Of a stretch of DNA of 64,000 bases, positions 23,901 through 63,611 are shown one piece after another. The DNA comes from Asterias rubens. Taxonomy: Eukaryota. The position numbers and the translations under genes are program-made. Each line of letters starts with the position of its first letter. The stretch's first letter is position 1. The notes beneath the pieces were generated by a model. That model had not been told where the DNA came from, ran no database searches, and worked only from the letters and a program-made list of their open reading frames with translations. The DNA is taken from assembly GCF_902459465.1 (NCBI RefSeq), contig NC_047069.1:17174001-17238000 (forward strand), written 5' to 3'.

Positions 23901-26900
23901 GTAAAAAAAAAAGAGCGAAAGTAACATAAATTAACATCTTTAAAAAATATTTAAAAATTAACATGAGAATTGATGATTGGTGAATTATTATTAGTGCTTC
24001 TCTCGAGGATCGAAGTTAAATATCACAAATCAAATATCAAAAGAAAATATTAAACATAAGTTTACTAAAATACAAACTTTTAACAAACTATATGTTTCAG
24101 CAGTATGACACCGTAAGCATTTCAAAACCTTTTGTTCAGCACAAAAATAACCACAAATCTAGAGAAAAAATATTAGTATTAAAAATAATTCAAAGTCCTG
24201 CTCCCCAAGCTGGTTTTCTCTCCAGAATCCTTAGTTGAAAAAATTAACCTGTTAGTTTCAAAACTTGTACAAACTACAGGTTTCAAAAGTTTGATGAAGG
24301 GATTTCATTAAATTAATCAGCGAAAATGTTCACAAACCTACCAAAAATATTGCAATGAAAATATTTTTCACTAAGTCTGGTGATCCCCCCCTCCTTGGCT
24401 GTAAAATTAATGTATTTAATCCATATTCCTTCAAAGGACCTTAAAAAGTTACATACCTTGCCAGTCGTTGCAGACCAGACCTTGAGTGTGTTGTCGTCAG
24501 AACCACTGACAATGCGCTGACCGTTGAATTGTAAGCAAGTGATCACATGATCATCATGTCCCTTCAATACCTTAAGAATTAAGGAAAACAGAGAAAACCC
24601 ATTAATACTTGATTTATGCAATACAGCTTCAAAACCAATAGTACTCTAAGTTAATTGGGAATGAACAAACAAGTGCAACAACCTTGTTCTATGAGTCAGA
24701 ACCTTAAAATTTCTAACAAAATTTAACGTTAAAACAAAATACAATCCCTCAAGTGCAAATGAGATAATTTTGCCACTTTCACCTTTAGAGAGTAGAGCAT
24801 CAACTCAGAATTCTTATGCAGGCCTTGAAATAACCTAAAGAAATTGCTGGGCATCCGGGGTTCCAATACAAATTTACACTTTCCTCAAAGAAGTGCCCCT
24901 TATAAGAGAGAAATTGCTCTGCCCCTTCAAGAATGAAATTCAAGGCCTGCTTATGAATATCTTACTTAAAGGCAGTGCACACTATTGGTAATTGTCAAAG
25001 ACTAGCCTTCACAGTTGGTGTATCTCAACATATGCATACAATAACAAACCTGTGAAAATTTGAGCTCAGTCTGTCATCGAACTTGCGAGATAATAATGAA
25101 AGAAAAAAACACCCATGTCACACGTAGTTGTGTGCGTTTAGATGGTTGATTTCGGGACCTCAAATGTGAGGTCTCGAAATCAAATTCATGGAAAATTGCT
25201 TCTTTCCGAAAACTATGGCACTTCAGATGGAGCCATTACTCTCCCCATTACTCGTCACCAAGAAAGATTTTGTGCTAAAAATTATTTTGAGTAATTACCA
25301 ACAGTGTCCACTGCCTTTAACTGGTTGGAGACTGTACTGTTTTTATTCCACAACTTACCTTTGGTTGTTTGATATCTGCAAACCTCCAGTTGTATTCAAT
25401 CTGATGCTGTCTGAGGTACATACTCTTCCACGGGCTGCGCGGCACGCCGGAATTAGAACGCCTCCTTGTCTGTTTACCATTGACTTCATCAATACCGGCC
25501 TCTCGGCACTTCTCTTTCCAGAGGAGGTTATCCTCACAGAGGATTCTCCAGTAGTGGCAAGTTTGGGCCGCGCGAAGGAGATCACGAGGCTCCAGGAAGG
25601 ACAGCACATAAAGAGCAAGCTGTTGGGAAGGAAGAGTTGGGAACCATAAGGAGTGTTGCGAATTTCGTAGGTTCGAATCCCACCCGAGTCATATGCGTTT
25701 GATTTCTTTTCACAGAACTCGGGAAAGTACTGAGTATACAGCACATATAGAGCAAGCTGTTGGGAAGGAAGAGATAGGAAACATATGGAGATGTGTTGGA
25801 AATGTGGTGGGTTTGAATCCCACCCAAGTAATATACCTGTGATTTTTCTCACAGAACTCAGGAAAGTACTGAGTATACAGCACATATAGAGCAAGCTGTT
25901 GGGAACTGAAGAGTTGGGAACCATAAGAAGGAGTGTTAAGAATTTCGTGGGTTAGGGTGCTGTAGTTTTTGAGAAATGAGTAAAACAATGTCATGAAAAT
26001 ACGTTTTTACAAGCTGAAGTAATTTTTCGTCTCATGATCACTGAGACAAAGAATATTTTCATGACATTGTTTTACTAATTTCTCAAAAACTACAGCACCT
26101 CAGCAAGTAATATTTTCCGGGAAGCTTTCTACTGTCATTATCTTAACAAACTGCGCCAGTTTAAAGTAAATCTGTGGACATTGCGTTTTTTGTCACAAAA
26201 AAAAATTACAAAAATACATAGACCCTTTAAGCACTTCTATGAGATTGGGCTCAGGTCTTATAGACGATGTGACCTCTGACGTCACACGAAAACCATAACA
26301 TGATTTGCGCGCATACCGCCGGGCAAAACCTTTGTGTTTTGGCAGCCAGCTAGAAAGTGTACGTAATCTTACTATGACTACGCAACTCAGTGCCCGGCGA
26401 AACATGACGTATATAGTGTTTTGTCAACAGAGGGCGGTTTGAATGTAAACATAGGTCACATCGTCTATACTACAAAATGGGACATGACACATTCTGTGTC
26501 TACAATCATGAAGTTGTTTTACCTCTCGAGGTAACAGCGATATGAAGTCTCTCTGGAACTGTGGTTCAATGATGGACATAACATGTCTGACCAGCGTGGG
26601 TTCACAATGGTTGATTAGCTCATCCAGGGCCAGTCTTTGCTCAGGTACATTCCAGTTCTGCTGAATAGAACACGATGGAACAAGAATTTTGTATACAGGC
26701 ACCTAAGGTATACTTCAAGGCATGGTATTAATGAGTAGGGTCGATGGCCTTAGCTTTGGTTCCAAACGGGACCTTCTTCAGAGGCATAAACAAGTACAAA
26801 CAAAACTTCAAGGCATGGTATGCTATGCTCTTTTGAGAAATAACTCATTAGAAACACCTACAATAATACTATTAAAACTTCAATGAAAAACATGCCAAGC

Positions 26901-29900
26901 CCAATTTCGTAAGCCTTTTTGAGGTATGGTGGACACTATAGGAGTGCACTGTTTTGGGGGTCTACAGAAAAATTTACCAAAACCAGATAGTGTCATGCAG
27001 TACTGTGTCCACCATTCCTCAAAATGGCTGATGGCCCTGTTTACTACACTATTGGTAATTACTCAAAACATTTATTAGCATAAAACCTTTCTTGGTAACG
27101 AATAATGGGGGAGAGGTTGATAGTATAAAAACATTGTGAGAAACGGCTCCCTCTGAAATAACGTAGTTTTCGAGAAAGAAGCAATTTTCCACGAATTTGA
27201 TTTCGAGACCTCAGATTTAGAATTTGACGTCTCAAAATCGATGAACTGAAAGCGCAAAACTCCGTGTGACAAGGGTGTTTTTTCTTTCATTAATATCTCG
27301 CAACTTCGACGACCGATTGAGCTCAAATTTTCACAGGTTTGTTATTTATGCACATGTTAAGATACACCAAGTGAGGAGATTGGTCTTTGACAATTACCAA
27401 TAGTGTCCAGTGTCTTCAAAGACCCTTAAAAAAGCATCACACTACAGGCCATAAGCACAAAATTCTGTGGTCAAATGTCTTCTTTAAGGCTTTATTAAAT
27501 CTGTCCTTCACTTATTGAATCCCTGTGAGTCCATACTCTGAGTCCTACCCGTTCATCACCAGAAAATATCTAACTACAAACAGACTACAAAAGAGAGACC
27601 TTGTAATGCATTTTTACCTGGAACGTTTTGAGCCATTCGTTGAGGTTGGGAGGTATTTGAAGCCTTGAGGACAGACGTCTTCTGGGTGTCTCGATGTTGT
27701 CTTGTTGGTATTGGGCAACTCGGGACGAGTTGAATTTCAGTGGGCTATTGCTACCCGGCAGGATTGATGTAGAGGTGGGTGATAAGTGCCTGAAAGGAAA
27801 AAAACAAAATGAGTAAATCAAGAACACATTTTACTTTATTTTTTTTTACCACATGAGGGCACAGCTTTCAACAGCAAATTTCAGCGTGTCACAATCAATG
27901 TATGTTATTGGGACTGCCTGTATGCTATTTTCAGGCATATTAGGTCCTTTGAAAATAGTAGGAAAATTGTATTTAGTAACAAGATCTGTTTTTTTAAAGA
28001 CTTTTCAATCTACTATCACAGATTTTCAGATTTTTGTCAAGGGCAAAATAATCCCCAGAATTTAGAATAAAGTAGGAGGAATATTTATCTTGGTTTTTAC
28101 CCTTACATCAATGTTTAAGGATTTATCTATCTATTAGTACTTTCCCCAAGTTCTGTGAAAAAAATCAAAGGCATATTACTGGGATGGGATTTGAATCCAT
28201 GACCTTTCTTACCAACTAGACCACTGAGATTGCCCGGTATAGCTAGAGGCAGTTCAATTCAAATCCTACATTATTTTTTAGCAGCATGTACCACAATGTT
28301 TCCAACTGCCTCTAGCTTACCGACAATCTCGGTGGTCTAGTGATACATGTTATATGAAACATATCTCTTTACACGTTCACGTATGTAATGTAATTATATC
28401 TGAAATGTAATATCTCTCTACACTTTCAACCAGTATTTAGGGCAAAACGGCTTATCTCCGCACTTGCTTTTCTCAAAATGTAATGTAACTGTTTTGCTAT
28501 GTAGGGTCCGTACAGCTCTGTGTATCAATAAATGGCTTTTCATCCTACCTAAGATTGAGACTATCATGAGGTCTGCAGAGTCTCTTGGTGGGTGAACTCC
28601 CCTTCTGGGTCCTTTCCTCCGCTGGCTCAGATGGCTTCCGCTTGATGCACTGTGAAGCGAGAGAACAACAAATTTCAGGAGTCAAATTTGCACAAAATGC
28701 AGGGCTCGAACTCTTCAATGCTCTACTGGTCTCAGGCAAGTGATTTCAGTGTTGGACTTGTAAGCTCAATACAGGACAAGTCCAGTAGACTTCAAAAACA
28801 AAAAAAATTATTAAACATTTTTTTCTGAAAGAATGATGTCCAATGAGTTTGTGTCTCACAAATACTTTCAAAGCTGCTTGGTTTCACCCATAAAACAGAA
28901 GAATTTTTATTTTTTTATTTTAGTGTTTTATTCAAATGAAACAGCTTAGATGATAAAAACGAGTTCCTATTTTGAATCTAGTCTCCTTTCATGTTGATCC
29001 TGGTCTTGTAAATAAAATCCAGGTCCAGATTCTGAGCTGAAAGTCCTCCGGTCTTTTCCCAAAAAATTTGAGCTCTGTATGCCATAATCACAACATGAGG
29101 CAGCTGATCCGCAATAAAGCCACAGAAGAATCTACAATACCTTCCTTAATATTATGGTGTGATTGGCAGCATATTGCGTCACAGCACCTTGTAAACCATT
29201 ACATGGTGCTATGTTTAAAAGGAGTAGATCTCATAATTCAAACATAGTCTAACATAGAAACAAATGTGTTTAGCGCCTAATAAATGTTGTGTATTATTAT
29301 TACTACTTACAGATTTATTTAAGGTACTTGATGACGTTGCCGACGATGACGCAGTTGATGAACTAGATGCCCTACTGCTATCACGTAACGATACTCCCGG
29401 ACCAGGGGAGCATGAGTCCTCAGTATCTATCGACACTTTGTTTCTCCTCGTTGCCCTACCACTATATGGTGGGGTTGAAAACTTATGAAGTATAGCAGCA
29501 GAACATCCTTGTCGTCTGCTGGCTTTACCATGTCTACCCTGAGATCCGATAGAGCTTGCCTTAGCTGCATTTAAGATCGACTTTCGGGCACTAGTTCTGG
29601 CCCTGACCGGGCTAGCATTTGACCGCCTGGCACTGGCACTAAAAGAAGTTGTTGGGGTTCTCGCAGTGGGTTTGATTCCACTAGGGCCAGCACTCATGCT
29701 GTGCTTTGGTCCGCTGGTGCCTGTCCTGAGGCTGCTGGAGCTCGCTTTGGATCCAATGGTTGGGCAGGAGCTGGACCCGGCAGCATGCCTGTTTGAATGT
29801 AGCGAAGGGGTAGTGGACGAAGCATGACTGGTGTACGTGCCACAAGAAAGCACATTGCTGTTTTGATCGATGACACTGTTGCCTATCCCGGGGACTGATG

Positions 29901-31184
29901 TCAGATCTTGTACACTGCTGAATCCATTAATACTCTTCAAATAAAACGAAACAAAAGAATTATGACATGCTGGTGGGTAGTAATAGTATACATAGTTTTA
30001 CAAACAACTTTTCACAAACGCCTTAAAAATACAAATTATTAGGTCTTTATGCTTCTGAATGAGGACAAAAGAAATGGATTTTACACTTTAGGAGAGGGAT
30101 ACAGCTTTTTCATGAGAAACCACTCAATCATGAGGCCACTCAATCATTCGATCAATCAATCACATAATATGTTATATCTTGACAAGATTTTACAAAAATA
30201 TTGGTTAGATTTCAAAGAGCCATTCACATTTCATACGGGTCGACGAAATCAAAATTGTTTACATGTAAGAATTGAAGAACAAAAACAATATACAAATATT
30301 GAGTGTCTCAGAGTGGAATGGGAGGAATATTATCGCAAGGTAAAATTTAGACTGTTCTATTTCAAGAGGCGAAATGGAACAGTCCAAATTTTACCGAGCG
30401 ATAATATTCCTTCCATTCCACGAATTAAAGCCACTCAATGTTTGTTTTATATAACTGACATATAGATCCATGTCATTTCATGTATTTTAAAAGTATAACA
30501 TTATGAAAAATCACACAAAAATTAATTACTGACAACCAAAAATCGGATCACAACCTTTTGCACAGGTGCTCCTTTGTTTTAGCAGTGGCGCGGCGGCGCT
30601 GTACTGCTCAAAAACATTGGGAACAAGGATGATCCAAACTGTTGAATGGGAAATGCTATTTTCGTGGGCGAATAGGTCTTTTTGATCGCCGATGCGGATG
30701 GGAGTAATAGTGAATGTCACGTGAAGTAAGTTACACCAATCAAATGACAAGGATCTGTATGTCAGTTATATAATAAAATTTATGCTATGTTCAATGCCAA
30801 CATTTGTCATCAATAAATGAATGCAAAGCTTTAGTACTCAAAATGTTCTGGGCCAAATATCATAGAGCTGCTTAATTGTGTGCTTAAAAGCACACAATTT
30901 ACTAAGCATCAAACAGTTTTGCCTACTGGAAGACAGTTTATTACCAGCTCAGTTGTATGTGCACAGTTTGTGACTGGTTACCTGCTTAACTTTGCTAAAA
31001 GCAGAAATTGTTTTAAAGCAATATTTTTTGTTTAAGTAGCTCTATGAAATTGGGCCCAATTTGGTACAATGTAGCTCACCTGACGCCTCTCCACAATGGC
31101 TTCAGCCCGGGCTTTCCCTACGCCCAATAAGGTGGCCAACTCATCCACTTTGGCCGAGTTGATGTCCACCCTTCGGCCAGACAT
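20984..31184 (-). CDS. FBXW7: F-box/WD40 repeat protein 7 with a predicted N-terminal HhH domain, 801 aa as joined
   Basis: Exons (minus strand): 31184-31080, 29934-29311, 28649-28549, 27789-27618, 26657-26523, 25619-25359, 24570-24457, 23870-23689, 23115-22890, 22454-22244, 21258-20984. All junctions are GT-AG with matching phases; total 2406 nt. Near-identical to FBXW7 in the D-domain (EWLKTFQNW...LALDELI), F-box ([18 protein letters not shown]) and WD40 repeats ([15 protein letters not shown] ... [13 protein letters not shown]). The core is certain; attachment of the first two exons is inferred. Confidence 0.95.
22014..22160. mobile_element. MITE with taggactag-rich interior (related copies at 40700-40817, 41030-41190 and 46830-47005)
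   Basis: TIR ggggtggatttcacaaagag / cttgtgaaatcaacccc. Confidence 0.7.
26259..26469. mobile_element. Small MITE next to an FBXW7 exon
   Basis: TIR tatagacgatgtgacct / aggtcacatcgtctata. Confidence 0.75.
30445..30778. mobile_element. MITE in FBXW7 intron
   Basis: TIR ttttatataactgacatatagatccatgtcattt / aaatgacaaggatctgtatgtcagttatataataaaa. Confidence 0.75.
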
Positions 31185-33639
31185 CTTACACACAACACGT
31201 TATGTCAATCCTGAACTGTTGTACATACTGCCTGATGGGTTTACACTGTGAAGTGGTTACACAAGCTCACACATGGATGGTCTAGTGAACTGTACAATGG
31301 GTTCAGACATCCTCATCTGTAAAAGAAGTGAAAAAATATACATATAAAATACAATTCAAATTTGTCTCTTTTTCCTTGTAGCCTGAAATCTTCCCATGTT
31401 CTGGTAAAGGGGTTTTCCCACCAAACTCCTACAATCTACTCTGGCACAGAATGACAATAGTGAAACTCAACCTCTAGGCCTTGCCAAATACCCATTGGAA
31501 ATTGTTACATGTAAATGTTATCTTTTTAAAAACTTATTTACAATCACATACATTTCTAGTAGATGTAAAGTTGTACACTTCCTGGTTGTTATTCATTGGT
31601 TAGAACATGAATACAGAAAACGACCAGAATACTACCCAATTCAATTGATAACCATTTTTTGCATTTATTCCATAAGTTATTTTGGTTGGCCCACAGTTTG
31701 CAACAGCTCATTATATTTTCTCAATTGGTAAAGGCTTATGTTTTGGAACATGGTATAAACAGGGACTGAATAGCCTGAAGTGTTCGCCTTTGAGCATGTA
31801 GGGAATCCCAAAGTCAATCTTACTTGACTTTGGCAACAGTTATGCAGTAACTTTGTTCTGATAGTTAGTTATTATAAATAATAGGTTGTCACACATATAA
31901 AACAGCAAATACATGTAATATTAATACATGTTATAATACAATCTTGAAAATTGATTAAATTGAAGGATATGTAGTGTGAAGGAAACAGAATATGTACTTT
32001 CCGGCTCAGACATTGTCCAGTGTATGCAAAACCATTTCCTGGTTTTTGTTTAATTAACCATAATGGCCCTTTCTAAAAAAAAAAAAAACACTTCACAAAG
32101 GAAACAGTCACAGGATTGTGTGAAAATCTAAACATGTCAACTTGTTTTATCCAGTAGGATTTGAAACTTTGCATGGTGGAAATACGATCTAAAAAGGTTT
32201 GCGGTAACACCATGTAATGACTATCCCCTAGGCCTACTCATTAGAGATAGTTATTACATGGTGTTACCGCAAACCTTTCTATATTGTTTTATCCACCCAC
32301 AAAATATAATCAATTTACTTTTAACTATAACAAAATCAACAAAATATTTGTGACAATTATGTTGATAGCCCCCCCCCCCCTTTAAAAGTTTAGGTCATTT
32401 GTAATTGTGCCATAGACCTCTGACTATTTGACTTAATGGGTCATTTAGTGACTTGATATCCAATCAAAATACAATTCTCTTGAAGAATTGTACATTTGTT
32501 GAGACCATTGAGTTAAGATGAAGGGTACAATTTGAAACAAACCTTCGTTTTTTTGACCAAAGTTGGGGATTCATTTTTTAGGAGAGTTAAAAAAAAAAAA
32601 AAAATAATAGTAATTTACAGAAGAAAAGCTCATGTAAAATAATCTAATGCGCGCCATTCTCCGTCGTACAAGTCAAAAATGAAGCCCATGGCTCCATGAG
32701 TTTTGACGCGATTTTCTCATGGATTAATAATCTTCACTTTGACTCAAAGGGAAGAACATTAATTCACCGATAATATTAATAATAACTGGACATTTTCTTT
32801 ACAAAGGTTAGTGAGGAACATTTAATTACCGTGAAATATAATCAGTGTCGACAAGATCGACAACAAGGATTAAAAAAAAGGAACTAAGCTAGCCGCTAGC
32901 CACTAGATTAGACCCAGTAACTGGGGCGCTGTATTCCTTTCTCAAAATTTTGACATTTTCTGTCACAGTAAAATGACAGAAAATGTCAAAATTTCGAATA
33001 TGCCTTTTTCGAAATATTGACATTTTCTGTCATAGTAAAATAACAGAATATTTCGAAAAAGGAATGCAGCGCCCAAGTTACTGGGTCTACCACTAGATAG
33101 GATTATTGTAATTTTTACTAAAAATTGTCATGATTGTTGTAGGAAAACACAAACCCCCAAAAAACCAAACCAAACAAAAGTTATTTAAAATAAAAAAAAC
33201 GTAGGCCTAATATAATTAATTATTAATCAAATGGAACAAGGAAATGGGGAACACAAATTCACATGCAAGAATCCAGCCCGTACAGGATCCACGGCACAGA
33301 CAGGTGTGAAAATATGATACAATACAATTTGTCATATAAAACGGGACAATTCACGACCGGTGGTGACTGCGCGTACACACGGATGTTGTGAATGGATGTT
33401 GAATCGTCGTTGAATCCACGGTCACGAAGCAGCAGAGTAACTGAACACGCTGAAAATCACTTTATTTGTACCGCAAAAACATAATATTCAGATTAATTGT
33501 AAGAATTACTTGAATACTGATATTCCCGTTTTGTTAACAAATACAAATCACGATCATACAGTATTTAAGAAAGACATAATACGAATAAAAGAATGAGTAG
33601 CTACCGTACCAACTGAGAAGTTAAAGCTCGTTTCTCCGT

Positions 33640-42893: not shown

Positions 42894-45800
42894 TCATACA
42901 AGCTCTGGTGACGAGATGGCAAGGATACCCGTAGGCCGTATACATTCAATCCCACCATGCATCACACACACCTTAGGGAATCCTAGACGAACCAGCTGGG
43001 TGGCAAACTGCAAGAGAAACAGACAAAGCAAACAATCCATGATTAATAATGAACGAGACAGTTGAGTGACAGAACTATAATAGCAGGCTTTGATAAAGTA
43101 TGATTTTGATTAATTTTCACAGGTTGATTGACTGCTGTGTTGGTTGAGGAGAGTCTAAAAAGTTGAGCTCATTCTCGACTGTCTAGAATGAGCTCAACTT
43201 TTAAGACACAAAAAGCTTTCTTGTGGGCACTAGCCTCCAATTCAGTACACTGCCAGAATGTTCCGCGAGACCCTATCCTTGTGCCACGAACAATCCTACA
43301 TGATTCGGTAGTCTAGTTGGTATTACACTGCTCTAGAATTGCAAGGGTCGTGGGTTCTAATCCCACTCGAAACATATGCCTTTAATACTTTTTCACAGAA
43401 CTCGGTAAAGTAATGAGTATACAGTGCTAACACACATCGGTGTACGGGTAGAAAACAAAACTAACATTCGTGTCCCCGATGCAAACTTAACATCTATTAA
43501 TCCTATGTGAGTGAAAAACGCCAATTCATTTGAATGTTCCAATGCAGCATTCCGGCAGACCTGAATAGTTATCCGATCCACTAAGAACATTCCTATCTTT
43601 TCAAATTGAATGAACTCAAAAACTTACAATCCTGCACTCTGTTCTAGTCAGTCCATGCAAGGTGTAGTCTTTTAAACATTGAAAGTATTGCTAATAATAG
43701 GAGTAAGAAGGACAGGGTGACAAATGAGGACCTTAGAAAGAAATCAAGAGTGCAGGATATCATTAAAAGACCAATAAATCAAAGAAGTGGAGATGGACAG
43801 GTCACCTAGCAAGGAGGTGTGACAACAGGTGGGCATGCAAAACAGCAAACTGGACTCCAAGAAACCAGACAAGAAAAAGAGGGAGACAAAACAGAAGATG
43901 GAAAGATGAACTAAGTACATATAGGGGCATTGCTTGGCAAAGCAATGATCAAGTGGAACGTTGATTCCTTCGTGCAATAAAACAGAGATCGTCATGGGTT
44001 TTAACTTTTTTAAATAGTAGATTTTCTGTATTATTTTTGTGAAATCAATCTTTTGTAATTCAGCTTTTCATGTAATATATATATATTTTTTATAGACTTT
44101 TGTGGCTTGAAGTGTTTTTTTTTTTTTTTTATGGAAATTCTGTAAATTTGTTGTAGAAAAGGCCGAAATATATTTCCAAACGTGGATAATAAAGTGAATT
44201 GAACAGACAGAGCAGGATAGAGTGAAATGGTGTTAAATGGCTAAACAGACAGTATTGTTAAAGGTAGTGGACACTATTGGTAATTACTCAAACATTGTGA
44301 GTTTTTTTTTTTCTCTCATAGTTATCTCGCAACTTTGACGACCAAATGAGCTCAAGTTTTCACAGGTTTGTTATTTTTATGCATATGCAAATGTTTAGAT
44401 ACACCAAGTGAGAAGACTGGTCTTCGACAATTATCAATAGTGTCCAGGGTCTTTAACCTAATCCTGTACTCACATTAGCAGCATTTTTCCCTCTGTTGCC
44501 AACAACGACCACAACCCTTCCCTTGTGGTTGAAGATTAGAGTGACTGCCTTGCAAGGTACCAAGTCTCCCTCAGGGGAGAATGCCTGGTTGAAGGGAATA
44601 TTCAGACTGCCTGGAATGTTGCCACGCACAAACCTGTTAGTTTTTTTTGTTAAGGAACTGCAAAAATAATTAGTCAGCTGGCATTTAATTGAGGTTTTGT
44701 TTCCAGTAAGCAGCACTTTGCAAGTCTTGTGCTTATAAAAAAGGAAAATCCAGCAAAGAGTAAGTATTATGCACAAGTATAACTCAATATGGTTTGGACC
44801 AACAAGGGGATACCAAACTGTTAACAGCCAATTTCTCTCATACAAACATTAGTTTAACGCCTATGATTAAAAAGTGCACAAATTTTTCTCTGAAATGGAT
44901 TGCATATATTGTTCCTTCCTGTGCATATATTGTTCCTTTACTAATTTATTTGGGTTTACTGTCTTAATGTTTTGCAATTTTTACTCTACGGATTGTTCTG
45001 TAAGGTCCTTGTATTTTCATTTGTTTGGATTGATGTATATTTTCCTATTGTAAAATTTTTAATATTTTTATGATTATTTTGTTATGCGCTTGTGTACATT
45101 TTATGGTATGGGCGCAAAATAAATGAATAAATTATTATCATAATTATTATTAAATCAATAAATTGTGATTCAGTAACTAGACGATAATATTTTGTATAGT
45201 CATTGTGAAGTCAGCGGTTAGGATTTGAACCTAGAACCTTGTGATTGCAAGTCCTGTGATCCAACCACATGGTCACAGTGACAGCATCAATTTCTAAAGA
45301 AAATTTTATTTGTAAAGCTAGCCATAAGAAAAGGATACTCTTCGGAGCTTCGTACATCAACACACATTATGACTGGACGGCTGCTTTTTGTCTTCTTGGT
45401 TGGAGAGCGAGAACCAGGAACTGCTCCAGGCTTCAAGTCACAAAGTTCCAGGAGATCTTCTGCCGAGATTCTTGGACTCACTTCGGACTTGAGTTCCTCC
45501 AGACTCAGTGGCTCTCTAGACTGCAAGACATCAAATAAAATTCATTTAACAAAAAATCTCATATCACTGCTTAGCACACAAATTTGCTAAGCACTGTAAA
45601 ATTCTGCTTACACAGGATTTTATATTAAGTAGAATTTGAGGAGAAGTCTTATTAGGTGAGGTTTGCGGTAACACCAGTTGAAAATCTCTTTTGAGTAGTG
45701 TTGGGTATAAAAAGAACCAGTGGGTGACGACTCAACGTTTCAATCAGTATATTCTAGACTTTATATTGTTTGCAACTGATTTCATGCTAATTTTTTGCTC

Positions 45801-48800
45801 AACATTGTTATTGGTTAAGGAACTTTGTTAAAAAGTTAAGCATCCAAAAGCAGCACCCTTATTTCAAAACCACTGCTTACCAGAAGCAAAGCAAAAGGCA
45901 TATGCTAACTTGCAAGCTAATTTGTAAGTGGCGGAGTGAATACCAAATACCAATCTGCTTGAACCAGAAACCAATAAACCACTTGAACAAGATGTCTCGT
46001 GTTTAAACAGCGCCCACAATGAGGTCCAAAGAAGACCTCCATTAATTAACTGAGTGTCATTCGGGCGCATACACAAATTAATGATCCCATTATTTGGCCC
46101 CAGCGCTAGCTGCCTGTGTAAGGGACCTAGACTCGCCAGCTCTGATAATGGGACGTCATGGTAGTCAGTACTGTAATATGAGACAGGCTTGACTGTTTGC
46201 ATTGTTTGGCCCCAGCGCTAGCTGCCTGTGTAAGGGACCTAGACTCACCAGCTCTGATAATGGGACGTCATGGTAGTCAGTACTGTAATATGAGACAGGC
46301 TTGACTGTTTGCATTGTTTGGCCCCAGCGCTAGCTGCCTGTGTAAGGGACCTAGACTCACCAGCTCTGATAATGGGACGTCATGGTAGTCAGTACTGTAA
46401 TATGACACAGGCTTGACCTGAGATGCAGCTGTGTTCCCTTGGTCTGGCCTACGGGGTGGTCTAGCGTGCTGCCTGTACGTTGCACTCTTTGGTGTGTTGC
46501 AGAAGATGCGGATAGACTCTCGCACACACTTCTCTATGTCGATTTCTGTTCATGAAAATGATACGTCAGAATTTTATTGCAGGAGAATCTAGGCGTATCA
46601 GTTTCATCAAGCTTCTTGACCACAAAAATTTGAAAATCACTAAACAATAGGAGACTTTGGAAAACTAGGTGGCAGCAGACTTACCGATACCTTTGTTTAT
46701 GTTCTTCTGAGCATACGCACATATCCAAGAACAATGGGTTTACCTGGTAAGTCTGGTGTCACCATGCTTCCCAAAAAGTCCCTGTGTGCTTACAGAAGTA
46801 TGTTACAAGCATAGGGTTAAGAGCACCGCCGTCGATTTCACAAAACTCTTCCTAACTTACTTATGATTAATCTTAGGACTTATAGGACGAGTCCCAGTCT
46901 TGCACTGTGACATGTAAACCTTAAGATTAATCCTAAGTTAGGACGAGTTATAGTTGTCCTAACTCGAGTTAGGATTAATCCCAGCGTTTCATGAAATCGG
47001 CTGCTGGACACATAGCTCTGGTGTTTCTTGATCAGCAGAGGGGGGGGGGTTCTAGTCTCGGTCGTGGCACTTGTGTCCTTGAACAAAAATACTTTATCTG
47101 ATAATTCCTTCAGATGGGACATAAAGCCACTGGTCTTGTGTACTAAGAGTGGTAGTGCATGTAAATGAACCTAGAACACTTATTGTAAACGAGTAGGGGT
47201 TAACCCTAGTGTTGCTGGTTCACATAGCAAGCATCCTTGTTGACAGGTTTCCTCAGGCTTGTGAGCTACAGTGATTACTATACTTATTAGGGGCCTTTCT
47301 CAAACCACGGCCTGGGCTCCGGCTCAGGCTTGGGCTCCGCGTGCTGTGTATGCAGCTTGCATTGTAACCTGCATTTTGGAGCAGCGCGTATTTGCACAGA
47401 TATCAGCACACGGAGCCTGAGCCGGAGCCCAAGCCGTGGTTTGAGAAAGGCCCCAGGTATCCTAAGTTTCATAACCATAAAAATAATCATGACAACTTAC
47501 CAGGCATATCAGAGAACAGCAAGATGCATTCATTGAAACCAAAGTTCAACAAACCGAACCTCAGCTGCTGTAAGATTGCAACCCCGATGCATATTGGGAA
47601 GGAGGAGTTGCCTAGCAACAGCGTATCCCATAGATGAAAGATCTTGTGCAGCGGAAAGACATCTAAAGGTACAAAAGCGAATGGCAAAAATATATTAATT
47701 TCAAGACAAAGAAATTTACAAAGTGCTGGTATTTTTGTTTACCCAAATACATTTATATCCATCTTCTTTTCTGGGATATAATAATTGCAGCAGGAATTCA
47801 ATTTGTTATTTTGGTTTTACTTTTACACCAATATGGGCATGTATGCACATTCAAACCAGGACCCTAAAGCAAAAGAGGACAATAGGGTCCTAGTTAGGTT
47901 AAAGGAACATGTTGCCTTGGATCGGTCGAGTTGGTCTTTGAAAAGCATTTGTAACCGTTTGTTATGAAATGCATCTGGGAAGAAAAAAGAAGTAGAATAG
48001 AATGATCCACACAAGTATTACTTGAAATTGCGTGTTTTTCCTTCGTCGACTAACACGGTCGGCCATTTATGGGAGTCAAACTTATGGGAGTCAAATTTTT
48101 GACTCCCATAAATTGTAGACCGTATTTGTTCGCAAAGTAAACAGAAAACCACGCAATTTCGAGCAAATTTGTGTGGATCATTGTATTCTACTCTTAAATC
48201 ATCTTTCTAACCATATGCATTTTATAACAAACGGTTACAAACGCTTTTCAAAGACCAACTCGACCGATCCAAGGCAACGTGTTCCTTTAAATAATTGAAA
48301 GGCTGAAGATAAAACGAGACAGTATGAGGTCCAACATTGCAGGCTGTATTTTACACTTGGGTCTTTTAATTAGAGTTGTGCAGAATAAATTTGTTAATAT
48401 AGTACTCATGTACTTGCTATGTAATTTGACCTTTGGGTCACCATTTTAATCAAATGCATTTAATTTTTTTATAACATTTGAAAATGAACAATTGCTATGT
48501 TACAACAAGTAAAATTTCTCATATGACCAGCCTGCAAGGAAATGCCACATTTACAAGATTTAAAAAAACAAACAAATATTACATGAGCTCTAGGAAGGAT
48601 TTTCATATTTTTATTTAGCTAAGGATTATGAAATTATATTGCAGGAATTAATGGGGCACATCTCAGAACATGTTCATCAGCTGTTTCTTTTGCCTGCCAG
48701 GAAACACCCTGGAATGTATTACAAGCTCACTATTTTTGAGACCAAAGACTAAGTTCTCTAGGACAAGGCTAGAGTAGTATCGTGCCTGCCCCACAAAACC

Positions 48801-51800
48801 CTTGTATGTACAACATCACTCTTGTAAACCATGAGGGTTAATGACTGCACTTACGTGAGAACATTGTGAGGAACCATGGTATAGCATAGAGCTCTGGAAT
48901 GAACCCAATGCTATTCATGTGATTACTCAACTCAGGATCATGAAATGCTATCAGATGGGAAAATACTGCAAGATACTCTGAAAATAGAAAAATAATCAAA
49001 TGTGTGATTATTTGTGTTACAAATTTATTAAAATCATTATTGATGGCCTTGCATTTTCGACTGCAGTAGTGTCTTTTTTGAAATACTTATTACCATTACA
49101 ACATACACATACTAGACCAACAAACACATACTGTGTGTACATGTACCCAACTAAAATGGGTGTGAAATGGGCCGTGTAATAGAGGTTATCACACTCTACA
49201 TGTAGTTGCCATGTACAGACCTGTGAGAATCAAAGATTCAAGTTTGCTTCAAGATAATGATGATAGACCTTATATGACATAATTTCAGAAGGGCCCCACT
49301 CAACTAGCTAGAGATAAAAAAGAGGTTGTTCATTGGGTAATCCTGTTTACTGTGTGTACAAATCTACACATTTCCACCATTTTATCATTGGATTAATGTA
49401 CCTCTAAGATGGCGTTTAGCCACAGCCACTTCTAATGCTGTTGAGTCAAACACAGCCATCAATCAGCCAGGCTCACTTCACAAAGAGCAAGCTTGGTCTT
49501 AAGCTGTGTACCAATCTTCATTGCAAAGCAATGTGCGATGTCACAATACAAACCACTATTGTGATATAGACAGCTCAAAAGATGAATCTTAGTGCTTTGT
49601 GAAATTGAGCCTAGGGTCCAATTTCATAGAAATGCTTAAAGGGACATGTTGCCTTGGATCGGACGAGTTGGTCTATAAAAGGTGTTTGTTACCGTTTGTT
49701 ACAAAACGCATATGGTTAGAAAGATGTTTTCAAAGTAGAATACAATGATCCACACAAATTTGCTTCAAATTTGCGTGGTTTTCCTATTACTTTGCTGACT
49801 TCCATAAATTGCTGACCGTGTTAGTTGACGAGGTAAACCGTGCAATTTCGAGGCATGTTTGTGTGGATCATTGTATTCTACTTTTAAAACATCTTTCCAA
49901 CAGTATACATTTTATAACAAACGGTTCAAACGCTTTTCAACGACCAACTCGCCCGATCCAAGGCAACGTGTTCCTTTAACAGCCGATTTTGTGTGCTTAC
50001 TGTGCGAGTTTCCATTTCAAAGCGCTGTTAATCGTAAGCACATGGAAAGGCATGCTAACCTTCCAGTGCTTACTGTATCAAAAATGAATGACTTAACAAT
50101 GCAAAACCATGGTGAATGCGCAACCTGTGAAATACGCTTACACCTAAGCAAATTTTTCTGCTATTAAAGCCATTATACACTTTCGGAACAGAAAAAAAAA
50201 AAAAATTCACAGATTTACAAATTACTTACAGGGTTTACAGAAGGTAATGGTGAAAGACTTCTCTTGAAATATTATTCCATGAAATGCTTTACTTTTCGAG
50301 AAAACATTAAAACAATTATCAATTCTCGTTGTCGAGAATTACAGATTTATTTTAAACACATGTCATGACACAGCGAAACGTGCGGAAACAAGGGTGGGTT
50401 TTCGCCGTTATTTTCTCCCCCGAATCCGATGACCGATTGAGCCTAAATTTTCACATTTTGCTATTTTATATATAAGTTGTGATACACGAAGTGTGGGCCT
50501 TTGGACAATACTGTTTACTGAAAGTGTCCAATGGCTTTAAGCAGGTCTAAGTAGTAGAGTGGAGGACATTCGTTACTACGATACTAACCTTGTATGATGG
50601 CTGAGTTGTCCTTCAAGAAGAATTTGTAAAGATACTTTGGAATGAAAGCTGACAGACAAGAGTAGGCTAGGGCTAAATGGGGCAAGAAAACACAACATAC
50701 AGACCATCCGTTATAAACATTTGGCATTTCAATAATGCAATAGCACACTATTAACAAATTTTAAGTGCTTTACAAATGCTTTAAGCTATACAAATGAGGA
50801 AGGTTTTGAGAAGTTTTTGAAAATCTACATTTCAAAAACATGGAACGTGGAATTATTACATACAAAATAATAGAGGTCTAGTTAATTTATCCATGGAGGT
50901 ATGGTTAAAGAAATGGATACAAATTCCCCAAATGAGAGCCTTACTTTGGTAGTTAGTACTACACAATAAAATATAACAGTACACAAAGTAAACATTGAAC
51001 CAGAGAGAATTCAAACAATTACTCTAAAGACAGACAGCACCCATGTTTTTTACCTTCATTGTTGAAATTGAGATAAAGAAATGGGGCACACAGCGAGTCC
51101 AAACCTGAAAAAAACATATAAAGAAGAGGACATTTTTATTCATCGTTTCTTACCCAGTAAACTCAATCCAAAACTCAAAATTTTAAAGGGATGACAAATA
51201 TAACTGGTAAGGCATTTCTTTACATCCTAGAACAAGTGCCTTTATACAGTAGAAGATCTTAAATGTTGACTTTTATGAAGGCATTGTGGTTTGTCGTGCC
51301 CGAGTTTGTCGTGGTTTGGCGTGGGTTCGAATCCCGGTTATGACACTTGTGGTTTGTCGTGGCCGAGTTTGTCGTGGTTTGGCGTGCGTTCGAATCCCGG
51401 TTATGACACTTGTGGTTTGTCGTGGCCGAGTTTGTCGTGGGTTCGAATCCAGGTTATGACACTTGTGGTTTGTCGTGGCCGAGTTTGTCGTGGGTTCGAA
51501 TCCAGGTTATGACACTTGTGGTTTGTCGTGGCCGAGTTTTTCGTGGTTTGGCGTGGGTTCGAATCCCGGTTTTGACACTTGTGGTTTGTCGTGGCCGAGT
51601 TTGTCGTGGTTTGGCGTGGGTTCGAATCCCTGTTATGACACTTGTGGTTTGTCGTGGCCGAGTTTGTCGTGGTTTGGCGTGGGTTCGAATCCCGGTTATG
51701 ACACTTGTGGTTTGTCGTGGCCGAGTTTGTCGTGGTTTTGGCGTGGGTTCGAATCCCGGTTATGACACTTGTGGTTTGTCGTGGCCGAGTTTGTCGTGGT

Positions 51801-54800
51801 TTGGCGTGGGTTCGAATCCCGGTTATGACACTTGTGGTTTGTCGTGGCCGAGTTTGTCGTGGTTTGGCGTGGGTTCGAATCCCGGTTATGACACTTGTGG
51901 TTTGTCGTGGCCGAGTTTGTCGTGGTTTGGCGTGGGTTCGAATCCCGGTTATGACACCTGTAGGCACTTAAACATAATTGCTTTGTAAACAATTGTACAG
52001 GTAGTGCATTTTCCTGATAAAAAAGTCTGAAACTGAGATCCAGATATTAGGAAGTACATTGAAATGAAGGCAGACCACCAAAAACACGTAAAAATGGACT
52101 TTAATAAACAGTAAAAACTTTAAAACTACACCCATATATACCGCCCTCATTCGGTTGATATTGGTTGATGTTAAACAGGGGGCGCTATTGAAAAACTCTG
52201 AGAAAAAACGGTTGAACACTTTTTTTATTTATTTAAAAAAAATTAATATGTGCTTCGAATGGTTAAATATGAAGACAAATTTCACATTTTTGTTCAATTT
52301 GATAAAAGTCTGAATTAGTTAAAAACTGACATTTCTCATCCCTGAAATGAGCACTTTTGATGTAGTATTGTCATTACTATTTTCCCACAGCCTTGCCAGC
52401 CTTGCCTACCTTGCCAGTAAGTCAGATGAGGATGAGATACAACCCATGCCTTGAGAATGCGCTTGAATTTATTATGCGCCTCAGGGGAGGAGAGAAGTTC
52501 ACTGTACTGATGGCACCTTGGGATGTCCACCTCGATCTGTCTGTCCGTCGTTGTGGGTGTCTCTTTGTCTATGCCGTCGTACACGGCCTTGAAGTCACCC
52601 TGTGTGTTATTGGAAGACAAGAATTGACAAATTAACAACTCACTCCGAGGTGGTGAAGCTAAAAACGAAGTGAAACGTAGTAGTCTTGGTCGATTTTATA
52701 TCTTATGCCCAGATAGTAGTTTATAAGCATGGCAATTCTTTTCGGAAGTGAGAAGTCTCCCGATTTTAAAAATCTACTATTCTCCAGTAGTAGCGAAGTC
52801 TCCAGAGTTCCAAAAAATCTACTCTGTGGTAGTAGAATACAAGCGAGACAAAAGTTCTCAAGAGATGTTATCTACCCAGCAAGACACATGATGGTACTGC
52901 AACGCAACCCCCCCCCCCCTCTATTGGGATTGAGACACCAAGATTGAAAGCACCAATGGGAGACTTTGAGGCGCTAGGTGGCAGCAGACTTACCATGTAA
53001 ATTTCCATTGTTTACGTAGTTCTGAGCATGCGCACTTTACCGAGAACAATGGATTTTACCTGGTAAGTCTGCTGCCACCAAGCATCCTGAAAGTCTCCAA
53101 TTGGAATTGAAACGTCAATCAGGATTGGAACACCAATTGGGATATATGCAGGGGAAGTTTTCATTTTGTTTTAGCAGCGTTACGTTAGTGAGGCTCTGAC
53201 CTCAACAGTGAGCAGTGCTGCCCATATCTCTGGCCTGTACAATGGTGGCGTATCAATCCTAGCCTCCCTGAAGACACGTCCAATGGTGTATGGATAGCCT
53301 CGTAGTATTCTGTCAAATAACACCACACGATGAAACTGCAAATGGAAAGCAACATTAGAGATTGAACCTGATTTGAATCTACTTATTGGGCCTTAAGCTT
53401 TCCTAAATCCATCTCAACTCTTAGAAGTAAACAGCAGAGGCAACCAAATAAGCTCAGAGGTTAAATCATTCACATCAGCAATCTCTGCCCTCACAGGTAC
53501 CCATTTACTCCTGAGTGATTTGAGAAGCATTTATTATTATAATAATGAGGCATTCATGATGTCTTGCCAAAAAACAATATGTGTCACTAACAGGATTCAA
53601 ACCCACAGTATGATGACTAAATCACAAAATACCACAAAGAATCTTAGGGCCATGTGATATGAGGAAGTTTACAGGCAACTAGTTCAAGGCTATCTCCATT
53701 AAAAAAAAAACATTCATAAATACCCCAGACAGTTTCTCTACTCCTATTGGTGGAGAGCGCGTCACGTGGGTGTTCATAAACCTTTTGTTAATGCACACTG
53801 GAGCTCTGTTTATGCACACTGAGCCGGCTTCCGCGTGTCGGGCGCGCAAGATTATCACGTGGAACGCGCAAATCATAGCTATCAGCGCATAATCTAAGCG
53901 GGCACGCGTACCACAACCTACGCGCCTCGAACAGATTCTTCACAAAGTTTTTGAATTTTTTTTTTCAAAGTGTCTGTAACTGTATTTGTTTATGTTTTTA
54001 AACAAAAGGGCATTTATGAATGGGAATAAAAGAGAGGGCCGCCGACCCTGCCGGCTTTAAACGTACAATGAAGAACTCGTCACTACCCTTTTATTCTCTT
54101 ATTTACATTTCCATGTTCACATATTTTGCTACCAAAGTGGTCCCGTAGCATTGTCTGCAGTTGGTTGCCTCAAGGTGCCTGAACATACCTGGTATTCAAT
54201 GTCCTTCTCTCTGATAATGAGTGGCAAGGTGGCCGTCTCCGATAGATCGTTGCTACTTGGAGAAGTGGGTAGATTCACCTTATTCTTCCTGGTAAATTTA
54301 CAGAAAATACACATTTTAATATGGCCTGACAAAAAATAACATCTTATGCAATACATGAACAAACTTAAACAATTGGAGCACTGCTAGATAATTATAACCT
54401 TGTCAACCGTGGCGGTCTCTGATAGATCATTGCTACTTGGAGAGGTGGGTAGATTCACCTTATTCTTCCTGGTAGATTTACAGAAAACACACATTTTAAT
54501 ATGGTTTCACACAAAAAAATCTTGATTTTGGGTTGAACAAAGAATAATTGACTAGAGCGGGATTTGAACCAACGACCTCCGGTTTAACGTGCCGGCGCTC
54601 TACCAACTGAGCTATCTAGCCCTATGTTGGTGGTCTCCCCCAGTCCCAATTTTGTCAATATCTTATGACAGAAACACAGACAAATACGAACTTATGTAAA
54701 CCATGAACAAACTAAAACAATCGGGGCAATGCCAGATAAGTATAACCTTGTCGTCTTCTCATGATGCACTTTGAAAATGGCCGCTAATGAACAAACTATA

Positions 54801-57800
54801 GAGGGCACACTGTATTCAGATGGAAAAACAGCCTAACTTGAAAAAATAACTTTTGAGAAAAGCAAGTAAAAAGATAAGCTGTTTGTGCATGAAAACAGGA
54901 AAACTGTAAAAGGAGGCTGAAAAATGACATGTTATATTCACATCCATACTTAGAATGTCTTTTAAACTTTGAAATTTGCCAAGAAATGATCTTAAATAGA
55001 AAAACACATTTTTTTGTCATGGAAAGCTGCATTACTCATGAGGAAACTCACTGCTCCAGCCATCATCAGGAAAACTGCATGATATCAAAAGTAAAAAAAA
55101 AATAAATACTAAAACCCAAACTTAATAAGAACTTACTCATCTTCAAGAAGAGGGTAGAAGGCTGTGTCGTCGATGTTCTCCATCCGCGTCTTAAGCTGCG
55201 TCATTGACAGCGTGACCACAGTGTCATCATAGAGGGAGCTACTGTCTCGCTCTAGGCCCACAACGTCTCCATACTGCGTCACCAGACTAGAGAAGAAGTT
55301 TCAAAGCAACAGTAGGTAATTAAGACCTGGGAGAACAGGGCTAAGTTACATAGAGATCCTTGAGCAAAAAGTTATGTTGAACAATTAACTGCTCAGCAAA
55401 ATTTAGCCAGAATCCAGTCACAAAATGTTATGTAAGCAAAATGGTATTTTGTATAGTTACTTTATTCCAGTAAGTAAAAATGTTTTGTGATGAACTACTT
55501 TTGTAAGTGGCCTGATGTTTTGACCCTAGCAGAATCTTTCTCAAAATCTAAATGACAACAGCACAACATACACAAATAAGTAAACTAGTGTAACGAGTTC
55601 AAATCATTGTGGTACTTGCTGCTAAAATATTGGATTCAAACTGCCTCTAGCTACCAGAAACTCGGTGGTCTAGTGGTAAATCATATGTTCTAGAATGGCA
55701 TAGGTCATGGGTTTAAACCCAACTTGAGTATTACTTTATTTAAAAGTGCCTAAACAACCTTATGCACATGACACCATTTGATGAGTAATTAAGCACCTTT
55801 AGCTAGAGGTAAAAAGAAGTTTGTTCATTGGCTCATCCTTGCGCCGTGCACACTTAGTTGTGAATCTTCCATTGTTTCATTATCCTCTTACCTCTAAGAT
55901 GGAGGTGCACACTTAGCTGTGAATCTTCCATTGTTTCATTATCCTCTTACCTCTAAGATGGAGGTGCACACTTAGCTGTGAATCTTCCATTGTTTCATTA
56001 TCCTCTTACCTCTAAGATGGAGGTGCACACTTAGCTGTGAATCTTCCATTGTTTCATTATCCTCTTACCTCTAAGATGGAGGTGCACACTTAGCTGTGAA
56101 TCTTCCATTGTTTCATTATCCTCTTACCTCTAAGATGGAGGTGCAAACTTAGCTGTGAATCTTCCATTGTTTCATTATCCTCTTACCTCTATAATGGAGG
56201 TGCACACTTAGCTGTGAATCTTCCATTGTTTCATTATCCTCTTACCTCTCAGATGGAGGTGCACACTTAGCTGTAAATCTTCCATTGTTTCATTATCCTC
56301 TTACCTCTAAGATGGAGGTGCACACTTAGCTGTGAATCTTCCATTGTTTCATTATCCTCTTACCTCTCAGATGGAGGTGCACACTTAGCTGTAAATCTTC
56401 CATTGTTTCATTATCCTCTTACCTCTAAGATGGAGGTGCACACTTAGCTGTGAATCTTCCATTGTTTCATTATCCTCTTACCTCTAAGATGGAGGTGCAA
56501 ACTTAGCTGTGAATCTTCCATTGTTTCATTACTCCTTACCTCTATAATGGAGGTGCACACTAGCTGTGAATCTTCCATTGTTTCATTATCCTCTTACCTC
56601 TCAGATGGAGGTGCACACTTAGCTGTAAATCTTCCATTGTTTCATTATCCTCTTACCTCTAAGATGGAGGTGCACACTTAGCTGTGAATCTTCCATTGTT
56701 TCATTATCCTCTTACCTCTCAGATGGAGGTGCACACTTAGCTGTAAATCTTCCATTGTTTCATTATCCTCTTACCTCTAAGATGGAGGTGCACACTTAGC
56801 TGTAAATCTTCCATTGTTTCATTATCCTCTTACCTCTAAGATGGAGGTGCACACTTAGCTGTGAATCTTCCATTGTTTCATTATACTCTTACCTCTAAGA
56901 TGGAGGCGTGATAACAAAAGAACACATTTTGGTAGTTTTTGCTAAAAGCTGATGTGGTTCGGCAATTCAAACAATAATACTCTGCTCATCTTTTTCTTTG
57001 TTTTCTTTTTTTTCTCCCTAGGACGAGCTGAGTCAACTGTTGGAAACATCGTTCCCACAAGTTTACGTTTGATTACGTTACATTTTATTCAATTCAAATG
57101 ATGTTTAAGACACTCACTCAGCTAAGTTACAGATCGGTGGACTACTTCTTAAGAGACCTTTCTTTCGGAGTTCAGCTTCAAGATCTCCCCCTGCCAGACC
57201 CCAAAGGTAGTAAACCTCCGCTATGGATCGCAACTCAAGATGGTCATCGCTGGATTCTGTTTGGAAACCAAAATAAAGGTTTGTTTGCATTGAGATAAAC
57301 CCAGTCTGCAAACCAAGGGTTCACTTCATAGGCTTTGTGCGAAATACGTCCCGATACGTGCAAATTCTACAGATACACGGAAAAAACAAACCTTTTCACG
57401 AGAAAACCATTAAGAATTCTCCAGATCTCTCTGTGGTGCTTTTAAAACCAAGATAAACGCGAAGAAGACAAAAATCCGAAGAAGATGTTTCTATTTAGTG
57501 CTTTGGCCAAACATAATATACAAACTCGGGTCCAGAATGCTCCCACAGTTTAAAACAAAACTGAACACGAACCCAGTGTCAATTAGCTTATAAATACTGT
57601 GCAGACAAGATATTTTTCACGCTAAAACAAATAGACTAAGAGCGACTCTAGATCGTTTCAGACAGGCGAACAACTGAAACAGTTGATCCTTTAAATTCTA
57701 TAGTGTCCAGTCGCAGCACGAAAATTCAAGAATTAAACTTTTTGTTTGTCTCTGGAGTGCCTATCTGAAGTGGGTGTTACTCACCTAGTCTGACGCTCTC

Positions 57801-62594: not shown

Positions 62595-63611
62595 GGTTAG
62601 ATTGCAGTGTTTGACTCCAGTATTGAATCTTTGGTCATTTGGTTTGCAGTTTGGTCTGATGGTAAAAACAAATAACATTTGATTTAAAATGGACAAAATA
62701 ACAATTTGGTTTGTAGTTTGTCTGATTATAAAAACAAATAACATGATTTAAAATGGACAAAATAATAAATGGCTTGACATTTCGTCCCTTAGCACTTTGA
62801 AGTTGGGATTATAATTATAGTTCTTGATCATAACAACAGTCAAAAGCAGGAGAGTTTAATATGATGAACCATTGGAATATTTATTGTAATTTTGTTTGCA
62901 CCTTTTTTCGTTATTGTAAAAAAATATACCCACTTGTTTTAATGGCTTTTTGGCAAATTAATTATTAATAAAACAATAAAAACAGTAGTGAGAAAGTGTT
63001 TTCAAAGCAGAGGTAAACCACGTACACTGGAAAACTGAATGAAAATTGAAATGTTAAAATGAGATAGTCACTTTGTTCATTAAAGATAATTGATATTGGC
63101 AGACTGGGTTGCTCATAATCATATATGGTCCATATGGTAAAAACCTCTTACTTCTTGCAGTGGACACTATTGGTAATTACTCAAAATATTTATTAGCATA
63201 AAACCTTTCTTGATTACGAGTAATGGGGAGAGGTTGATAGTACAAAACATTGTGAGAAACAGCTCCCTCTGAAGTGACGTAGTTTTCAAGAAAGAAGTAA
63301 ATTTTCACAAATTTGATTTCGAGACCTCAGATTTAGAATTTGAGGTCTCGTAATCAAGAATCTGAAGGCACACAACTTTTTGTATCTCGCAACTTCGACG
63401 ACCCATAGAGCTCAAATTTTTACAGGTTTGTTATTTTATGCATATATGTTGAGATACACCAACTGGGAAGACTAGTCTTTGACAATTACCAATAGTGTCC
63501 AGTGTCTTAAAGTTCTTGTCTTCTTAATTAATCATTCTTAATCTTAGTTGGTTAGTGCCACATGTATGTTCTAAGTTTTAGAACCTATAGAGTAAGTAAG
63601 AAGGGGAACCG

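Follow-up and report, generated by a model that had tools for sequence, protein, structure and literature searches.

A predicted FBXW7 of the starfish Asterias rubens with an N-terminal ComEA-type helix-hairpin-helix domain

The FBXW7 gene and its coding exons

We analyzed a stretch of 64,000 nt from the starfish Asterias rubens (GCF_902459465.1, NC_047069.1:17,174,001-17,238,000), referred to here as the window; all positions are window-relative. The window carries a gene for FBXW7, the receptor subunit of a ubiquitin ligase (E3), whose predicted product begins with a tandem helix-hairpin-helix (HhH) domain of the type known from bacterial ComEA. FBXW7 targets phosphorylated cyclin E, Myc, Notch, and Jun for destruction and ranks among the human tumor suppressors that are mutated most frequently. 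In vertebrates, the isoform-specific N-termini of FBXW7 decide its site of action.

Exon boundaries were set by the GT-AG rule together with the reading frame. The spliced FBXW7 gene extends over 31184-20984 on the minus strand and comprises 11 coding exons that join to a single open reading frame (ORF) of 801 codons, with all introns being GT-AG. The features of the gene are, from 5' to 3':

31185..31392, minus strand: conserved sequence, either 5' leader or promoter-proximal, with 87-91% identity to the starfish contig L001 (see next section)
31080..31184, minus strand: coding exon 1, ATG and first HhH hairpin (LLGVGKARA), 35 codons, donor CAG/GTGAGC, phase 0
29935..31079, minus strand: intron 1, 1145 nt, within the HhH domain
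29311..29934, minus strand: coding exon 2, second HhH hairpin (VPGIGNSVI) and a 180-aa basic Ser/Thr/Ala-rich disordered region, phase 0
28650..29310, minus strand: intron 2, 661 nt
28549..28649, minus strand: exon 3, the first FBXW7 common exon (CIKRKPSE...KRLCRP), strong acceptor, no ATG
27618..27789, minus strand: exon 4, no ATG; detectable similarity to insect FBXW7 starts here
26523..26657, minus strand: exon 5, dimerization (D) domain, by alignment to damselfly FBXW7
25359..25619, minus strand: exon 6, F-box and linker helix, by Pfam F-box-like and a match to human FBXW7 in the PDB
24570-24457, 23870-23689, 23115-22890, 22454-22244, and 21258-20984 (stop included), minus strand: exons 7-11, WD40 propeller

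The exon 1 donor (CAG/GTGAGC at 31079, with the slash marking the splice site) pairs with the exon 2 acceptor ...tttatttgaag/AGT at 29934, and the exon 2 donor (TCT/GTAAGT at 29310) pairs with the exon 3 acceptor ...ctcgcttcacag/TGC at 28649, the tract ahead of 28649 reading ...ttgttctctcgcttcacag/. Exon 3 ends in the donor TAG/GTAGGA past 28549 and is followed by the exon 4 acceptor ...tttcctttcag/ ahead of 27789. The phases of these three junctions are 0, 0, and 2, with 28549 and 27789 being joined as AG+G. A previous sequence-only reading of this DNA had translated the first three exons and proposed phase-0 joins between 31080 and 29934 and between 29311 and 28649. Re-translation reproduced all three peptides exactly, and both joins agree with the phases and splice sites. 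Neither exon 3 nor exon 4 contains an ATG or a methionine in frame, and therefore FBXW7 must have a coding exon farther upstream that ends in a phase-0 donor.

According to its translated sequence, the downstream part of the gene is a complete FBXW7, consisting of a KRK/RRR basic region, D domain, F-box, and eight-blade WD40 propeller, and thus shares its body with the FBXW7/Cdc4/Archipelago/SEL-10 proteins. The same continuation from the 5' exons into the D-domain, F-box, and WD40 exons had been anticipated and is borne out by the 801-aa product, which is 75% identical to FBXW7 of the damselfly Ischnura elegans (P0003) over residues 307-799 (BLASTP). Residues 334-378, which we take to be the D domain, align to the damselfly protein without gaps, and residues 467-799 align to it as far as the C terminus. 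The F-box exon matches Pfam F-box-like (E 1.6e-13) and, along its entire length, chains of human FBXW7 (PDB codes 2OVP, 5V4B, and 7T1Y; 117 bits). For the WD40 blade exon, the natural protein in the PDB that matches best is again FBXW7. The WD40 motifs, including AAVRCVQY, are identical in the starfish and the insect protein; these motifs presumably hold the degron-binding Arg triad, that is, the phosphate-binding arginines. No FBXW7 chain in the PDB spans the N-terminal common exons. The damselfly protein was fetched with a contrived two-row alignment of the F-box exon and an unrelated 498-aa ORF of the window, the E-values of which are meaningless; its identity rests on the source name and the independent BLASTP alignment, and the retrieval yielded this one FBXW7 only.

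The D-domain exon is preceded by a tandem acceptor, CAG/CAG (NAGNAG type, 26660-26655), so that the exon can start at 26660 or 26657 and one glutamine is optional (KTFQ(Q)NWNVPE).

Conservation of the 5' exons in a related starfish

By scanning metagenome contigs with exon 2, we found a contig of 2082 nt (JACSEG010010016.1, here L001). Judged by its sequence, L001 comes from a related starfish and is orthologous to this locus. Collinearity with window 31392-31800 extends over the first ∼790 nt of L001 (78-92% identity), and between the exons identity amounts to 91-94% (on the amino acid level, 94% for exon 1 and 100% for exon 3). L001 lacks intron 1: a single exon without interruption (ATG at 792, end at 1520) encodes both the HhH domain and the Ser-rich region. 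The contiguity of this exon independently proves the 31080/29934 junction in the window. The HhH/Ser-rich coding stretch is 729 nt long (243 codons) in both species, without a single indel despite its low complexity. Between the two species, we obtained a dS (synonymous divergence) of 0.20 and a dN (nonsynonymous divergence) of 0.034 for this stretch, corresponding to a dN/dS of 0.17 (0.14 for the HhH domain and 0.18 for the linker). The equal length and the low dN/dS indicate a constrained coding exon under purifying selection.

Intron 2 measures 111 nt in L001 versus 661 nt in the window. Its 3' end in L001 has the pyrimidine tract and CAG found in the window, and the IKRK exon follows (dN 0, dS 0.21). 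A stretch of 111 nt is too short to hold a polyadenylation site as well as a new promoter with a first exon, so that a single transcript is the simplest reading of the contig. We also considered L001 as a processed copy and rejected this option, as the contig retains intron 2 and the beginning of intron 3 and is flanked upstream by syntenic sequence.

The space in which the 5' exons of FBXW7 can lie is limited. Upstream of FBXW7, on the same strand, lies TBCK, the last coding exon of which ends near 42.9 kb (42897); the 5' exons of FBXW7 are therefore confined to the ∼14 kb between TBCK and exon 3. When this interval was scanned for an ATG-initiated ORF with a strong phase-0 donor, HhH exon 1 was the only segment to pass, although short or weak first exons could escape such a scan. 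Similarity to the acidic first exon of insect FBXW7 was not found in these ∼14 kb.

Vertebrate FBXW7 isoforms use different first exons on a common exon, giving rise to the nuclear alpha form, the membrane-anchored beta form, and the gamma form with a nucleolar N terminus. The layout of variable first exons and a common exon, invoked in the sequence-only reading, recurs in the damselfly gene (locus L002), in which a first coding exon of 216 codons joins, likewise in phase 0, an exon with RKRK at its start. First-exon boundary and phase are the same as at the xKRK common exon of the starfish. The two N-termini differ: that of the damselfly is acidic and alpha-like, whereas that of the starfish consists of a folded (HhH)2 domain and a basic Ser-rich linker. 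The earlier proposal that the HhH exons serve as FBXW7 first exons on the xKRK common exon is supported by the conservation of donor and acceptor, which are only 111 nt apart in L001. From the sequence, the HhH and Ser-rich exons are thus very likely the 5' coding exons of FBXW7, with a predicted phase-0 splice onto the common exon, and as an architecture the fusion is strongly supported by comparative genomics.

Two further features of this region were noted. Intron 1, which splits the HhH domain in the window, is exactly absent at L001 896/897, a comparison of two starfish (dS ∼0.2) without an outgroup. At least 650 of its 1145 nt consist of three inverted-repeat elements that resemble MITEs (miniature inverted-repeat transposable elements; 30313-30421, 30442-30778, and 30849-31058). 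The 5' leader (window 31185-31392; L001 589-791) is better conserved than the flanks farther upstream. It holds several upstream ATGs and, near 31318, a pyrimidine tract with a CAG that is a possible acceptor, which suggests a leader with upstream ORFs and perhaps an extra upstream non-coding exon.

The HhH domain and its proposed role

The N-terminal peptide had been assigned to the ComEA/HHH_3 class of tandem HhH domains, and profile searches confirm this assignment. The joined peptide of exons 1 and 2 matches Pfam HHH_3 with an E-value of 8.5e-18 (64.7 bits, cut-off 27) over profile positions 4-62 of 65, and NCBIfam TIGR00426 (ComEA HhH repeat region) with 58.4 bits (cut-off 53.1). Both matches are far above chance. 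Exon 2 by itself scores only 14 bits with HHH_3, demonstrating that the HhH domain truly crosses intron 1. The model for whole ComEA (TIGR01259) reaches 51.3 bits versus a cut-off of 152; the HhH part alone matches, and the protein is not a whole ComEA.

The HhH domain was modeled with AlphaFold, using as input the orthologous L001 sequence and four repeats from a bacterial relative. The model has a mean pLDDT (predicted local distance difference test) of 87.3 and comprises four helices (residues 13-16, 23-36, 43-48, and 54-60). Its top PDB match is Geobacillus ComEA (8dss_B) with a template modeling (TM) score of 0.81, a root mean square deviation of 1.4 Å, and 41% sequence identity, followed by the HhH domains of Tex (2oce), TEFM (5ol9), and KIF22 (2edu). 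Both GhG hairpins are intact. As modeled, the domain is a real and complete HhH domain with a ComEA-like fold. With the C-terminal (HhH)2 domain of bacterial ComEA (8DSS), the starfish protein thus shares both the full-length profile match and the fold. In contrast to ComEA, it lacks the N-terminal anchor or SLBB part, is encoded by an animal, is split by an intron in Asterias rubens, and is fused to an E3 ligase receptor. The same small (HhH)2 fold is attached to larger proteins in Tex/SRBD1, at the N terminus of TEFM, and at the C terminus of KIF22; the starfish domain is 24-29% identical to these versus 41% to ComEA, and none of them is a ubiquitin ligase subunit. Compared with the repeats of P0001, a bacterial protein with multiple HhH domains, the sequence identity of the domain is 42-45%.

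The HhH domain is followed by a linker of ∼180 amino acids that is rich in serine (27%) and strongly basic (25 Lys and Arg versus 4 Asp and Glu). Residues 189-193 of this linker (window 29475-29461) fit the TPPxS core of the Cdc4/FBXW7 phosphodegron, with TPPSS in L001. A motif of this type arises in 2.5% of linker shuffles and was spotted post hoc; as a candidate, it could be a self-degron or a pseudosubstrate.

The best explanation for these findings is, in our view, an FBXW7 with an N-terminal ComEA-type (HhH)2 domain and a basic linker that together probably act as a DNA-localizing module, and we assign this reading a probability of about 0.78. By analogy to the isoform-specific first exons of vertebrates, the HhH module would be a localization device. 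ComEA-type (HhH)2 domains touch the DNA backbone via two GhG hairpins. In the starfish protein, the (HhH)2 domain (residues ∼4-62), aided by the +21 linker, may bind this backbone independently of sequence. FBXW7 dimerizes through its D domain; a dimer would thus have two DNA-binding heads, each on a long basic tether, and the avidity gained from two HhH domains could keep SCF-FBXW7 at chromatin or DNA. Phosphorylated substrates would then be captured at the DNA by the unaltered WD40 pocket; the arginine motifs of the WD40 propeller are identical to those of the insect orthologue, and substrate recognition should therefore be unchanged. We arrive at DNA tethering by inference.

Several observations weigh against this reading. 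The HhH core has a net charge of 0 (7 Lys and Arg, 7 Asp and Glu), and PsbU is among its fold matches, some (HhH)2 domains being known to bind proteins, so that DNA binding is not assured. The fusion transcript could thus be real and its HhH domain a protein- or RNA-binding module, as with PsbU and the XPF/ERCC1-type pairs among the fold matches, or else a recently captured domain (e.g. from a mobile element) with little function. We consider this unlikely: both hairpins are intact, ComEA-type profiles are matched above their curated cut-offs, the ComEA DNA-binding domain is the nearest neighbor among solved structures, and the dN/dS of 0.14 on the HhH domain speaks against a functionless passenger.

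Other adverse points concern the fusion itself. The exon 2 donor has a weak exon side (TCT), and the reading frame stays open for 31 codons past this donor, which in principle permits a short stand-alone HhH protein from unspliced RNA. The support from L001 comes from one short contig of one related species, filed in a metagenome collection. The damselfly FBXW7 gene, including 10 kb upstream and all introns, holds no HhH exon, and the HhH module is therefore not general. In the protein collections, we found no model containing exon 2; here, the queries were of exon size, and proteins of ∼800 amino acids were beyond the length range. Under the same length limit, word-indexed searches with exon 2 and the L001 N terminus (region 1-66) gave no match. 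A search of representative proteins with exon 2 returned only the bacterial multi-ComEA protein P0001, and the HhH proteins retrieved from the Atlas by features and by shape were all bacterial, archaeal, or viral, the remaining matches being small F-box proteins.

The open frame past the donor and the lack of an annotated fusion protein in the collections searched would suit a separate small gene of ∼274 amino acids (stop near 29218) made up of the HhH and Ser-rich exons, with FBXW7 starting from another first exon and skipping them, and an AATAAA ∼290 nt farther on fits such a gene as well. We nevertheless hold it to be very improbable, because the similarity between the window and L001 reaches only 8 nt beyond the end of exon 2 (the GTAAGTAG donor) and breaks at this conserved GTAAGT site, the read-through tails are unlike each other and stop after 31 codons in the window versus 7 in L001 although the exon itself is 93% identical with a dN/dS of 0.17, only 111 nt lie between the donor and the FBXW7 acceptor in L001, the databases searched contain no separate small protein (exact look-ups of the neighboring single-exon ORFs of the window and of the L001 read-through ORF gave no record), and exons 3 and 4 lack an ATG, the 14 kb between them and TBCK offering no second strong first exon.

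If the HhH-FBXW7 reading is true, this starfish possesses a natural FBXW7 with a DNA-binding head, and thereby a ready test of whether the placement of SCF-FBXW7 on DNA alters its substrates, among which chromatin-bound transcription factors and repair factors may be affected. It would also mean that a domain of prokaryotic type was recruited to an animal E3 ligase. Starfish oocytes and embryos permit mRNA injection and imaging, which makes the idea of DNA tethering directly testable.

Distribution of the architecture and neighboring features

The sequence-only reading knew of no fusion of HhH and FBXW7, and in the open literature on FBXW7 and helix-hairpin-helix we likewise found no paper describing such an architecture. 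Among AlphaFold-DB clusters, the HhH model is matched best by two long proteins, both with 50% identity and with the HhH domain at the extreme N terminus:

A0A0B6ZF77, 846 aa: HhH domain at residues 1-70
A0A6A0GW92, 971 aa: HhH domain at residues 16-85

From papers that use neighboring accessions, the accession block of A0A0B6ZF77 belongs to a gastropod and that of A0A6A0GW92 to the amphipod Hyalella azteca. Both proteins are known to us by their HhH part alone; the fold model of the F-box exon was poor (pLDDT 54), and its matches are meaningless. Tentatively, HhH-FBXW7 might be an old bilaterian isoform that is present in echinoderms, molluscs, and crustaceans and was lost in vertebrates and insects, an idea we rate as possible but rather doubtful. 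If it were true, SCF-FBXW7 would originally have had a DNA-tethered form. The starfish fusion would gain in interest if the sequences from the mollusc and the crustacean turned out to encode FBXW7.

AlphaFold-DB also has HhH domains of ∼31-39% identity in other, probably eukaryotic entries such as A0A267E6X8 (360 aa) and S9WJI7 (293 aa). Animal proteomes may contain ComEA-type HhH domains more often than is usually assumed. A search of BFVD returned ComEA-like proteins of giant viruses and no retroelement.

Besides FBXW7, the window contains exons of TBCK (kinase, TBC, and rhodanese parts) at ∼42900-62750 on the minus strand, that is, in the same orientation as FBXW7. An ORF of 353 codons at 13212-12154 (minus strand), 7.8 kb downstream of the FBXW7 stop, encodes 12 C2H2 zinc fingers (Pfam zf-C2H2, 3.6e-64); no exact product of this ORF is on record. 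Between FBXW7 and TBCK, at 39065-37653 (minus strand), lies an intact single-exon ORF of 471 codons, the N-terminal half of which contains repeated CxxC pairs. Pfam gives no match, and the nearest Atlas clusters are unnamed eukaryotic and DUF6589 proteins; going by these clusters, the ORF is probably derived from a mobile element. The C-terminal 273 amino acids of this ORF recur, with one change, on a marine metagenome scaffold of the ENA (P0002/L003, ERZ23498661).

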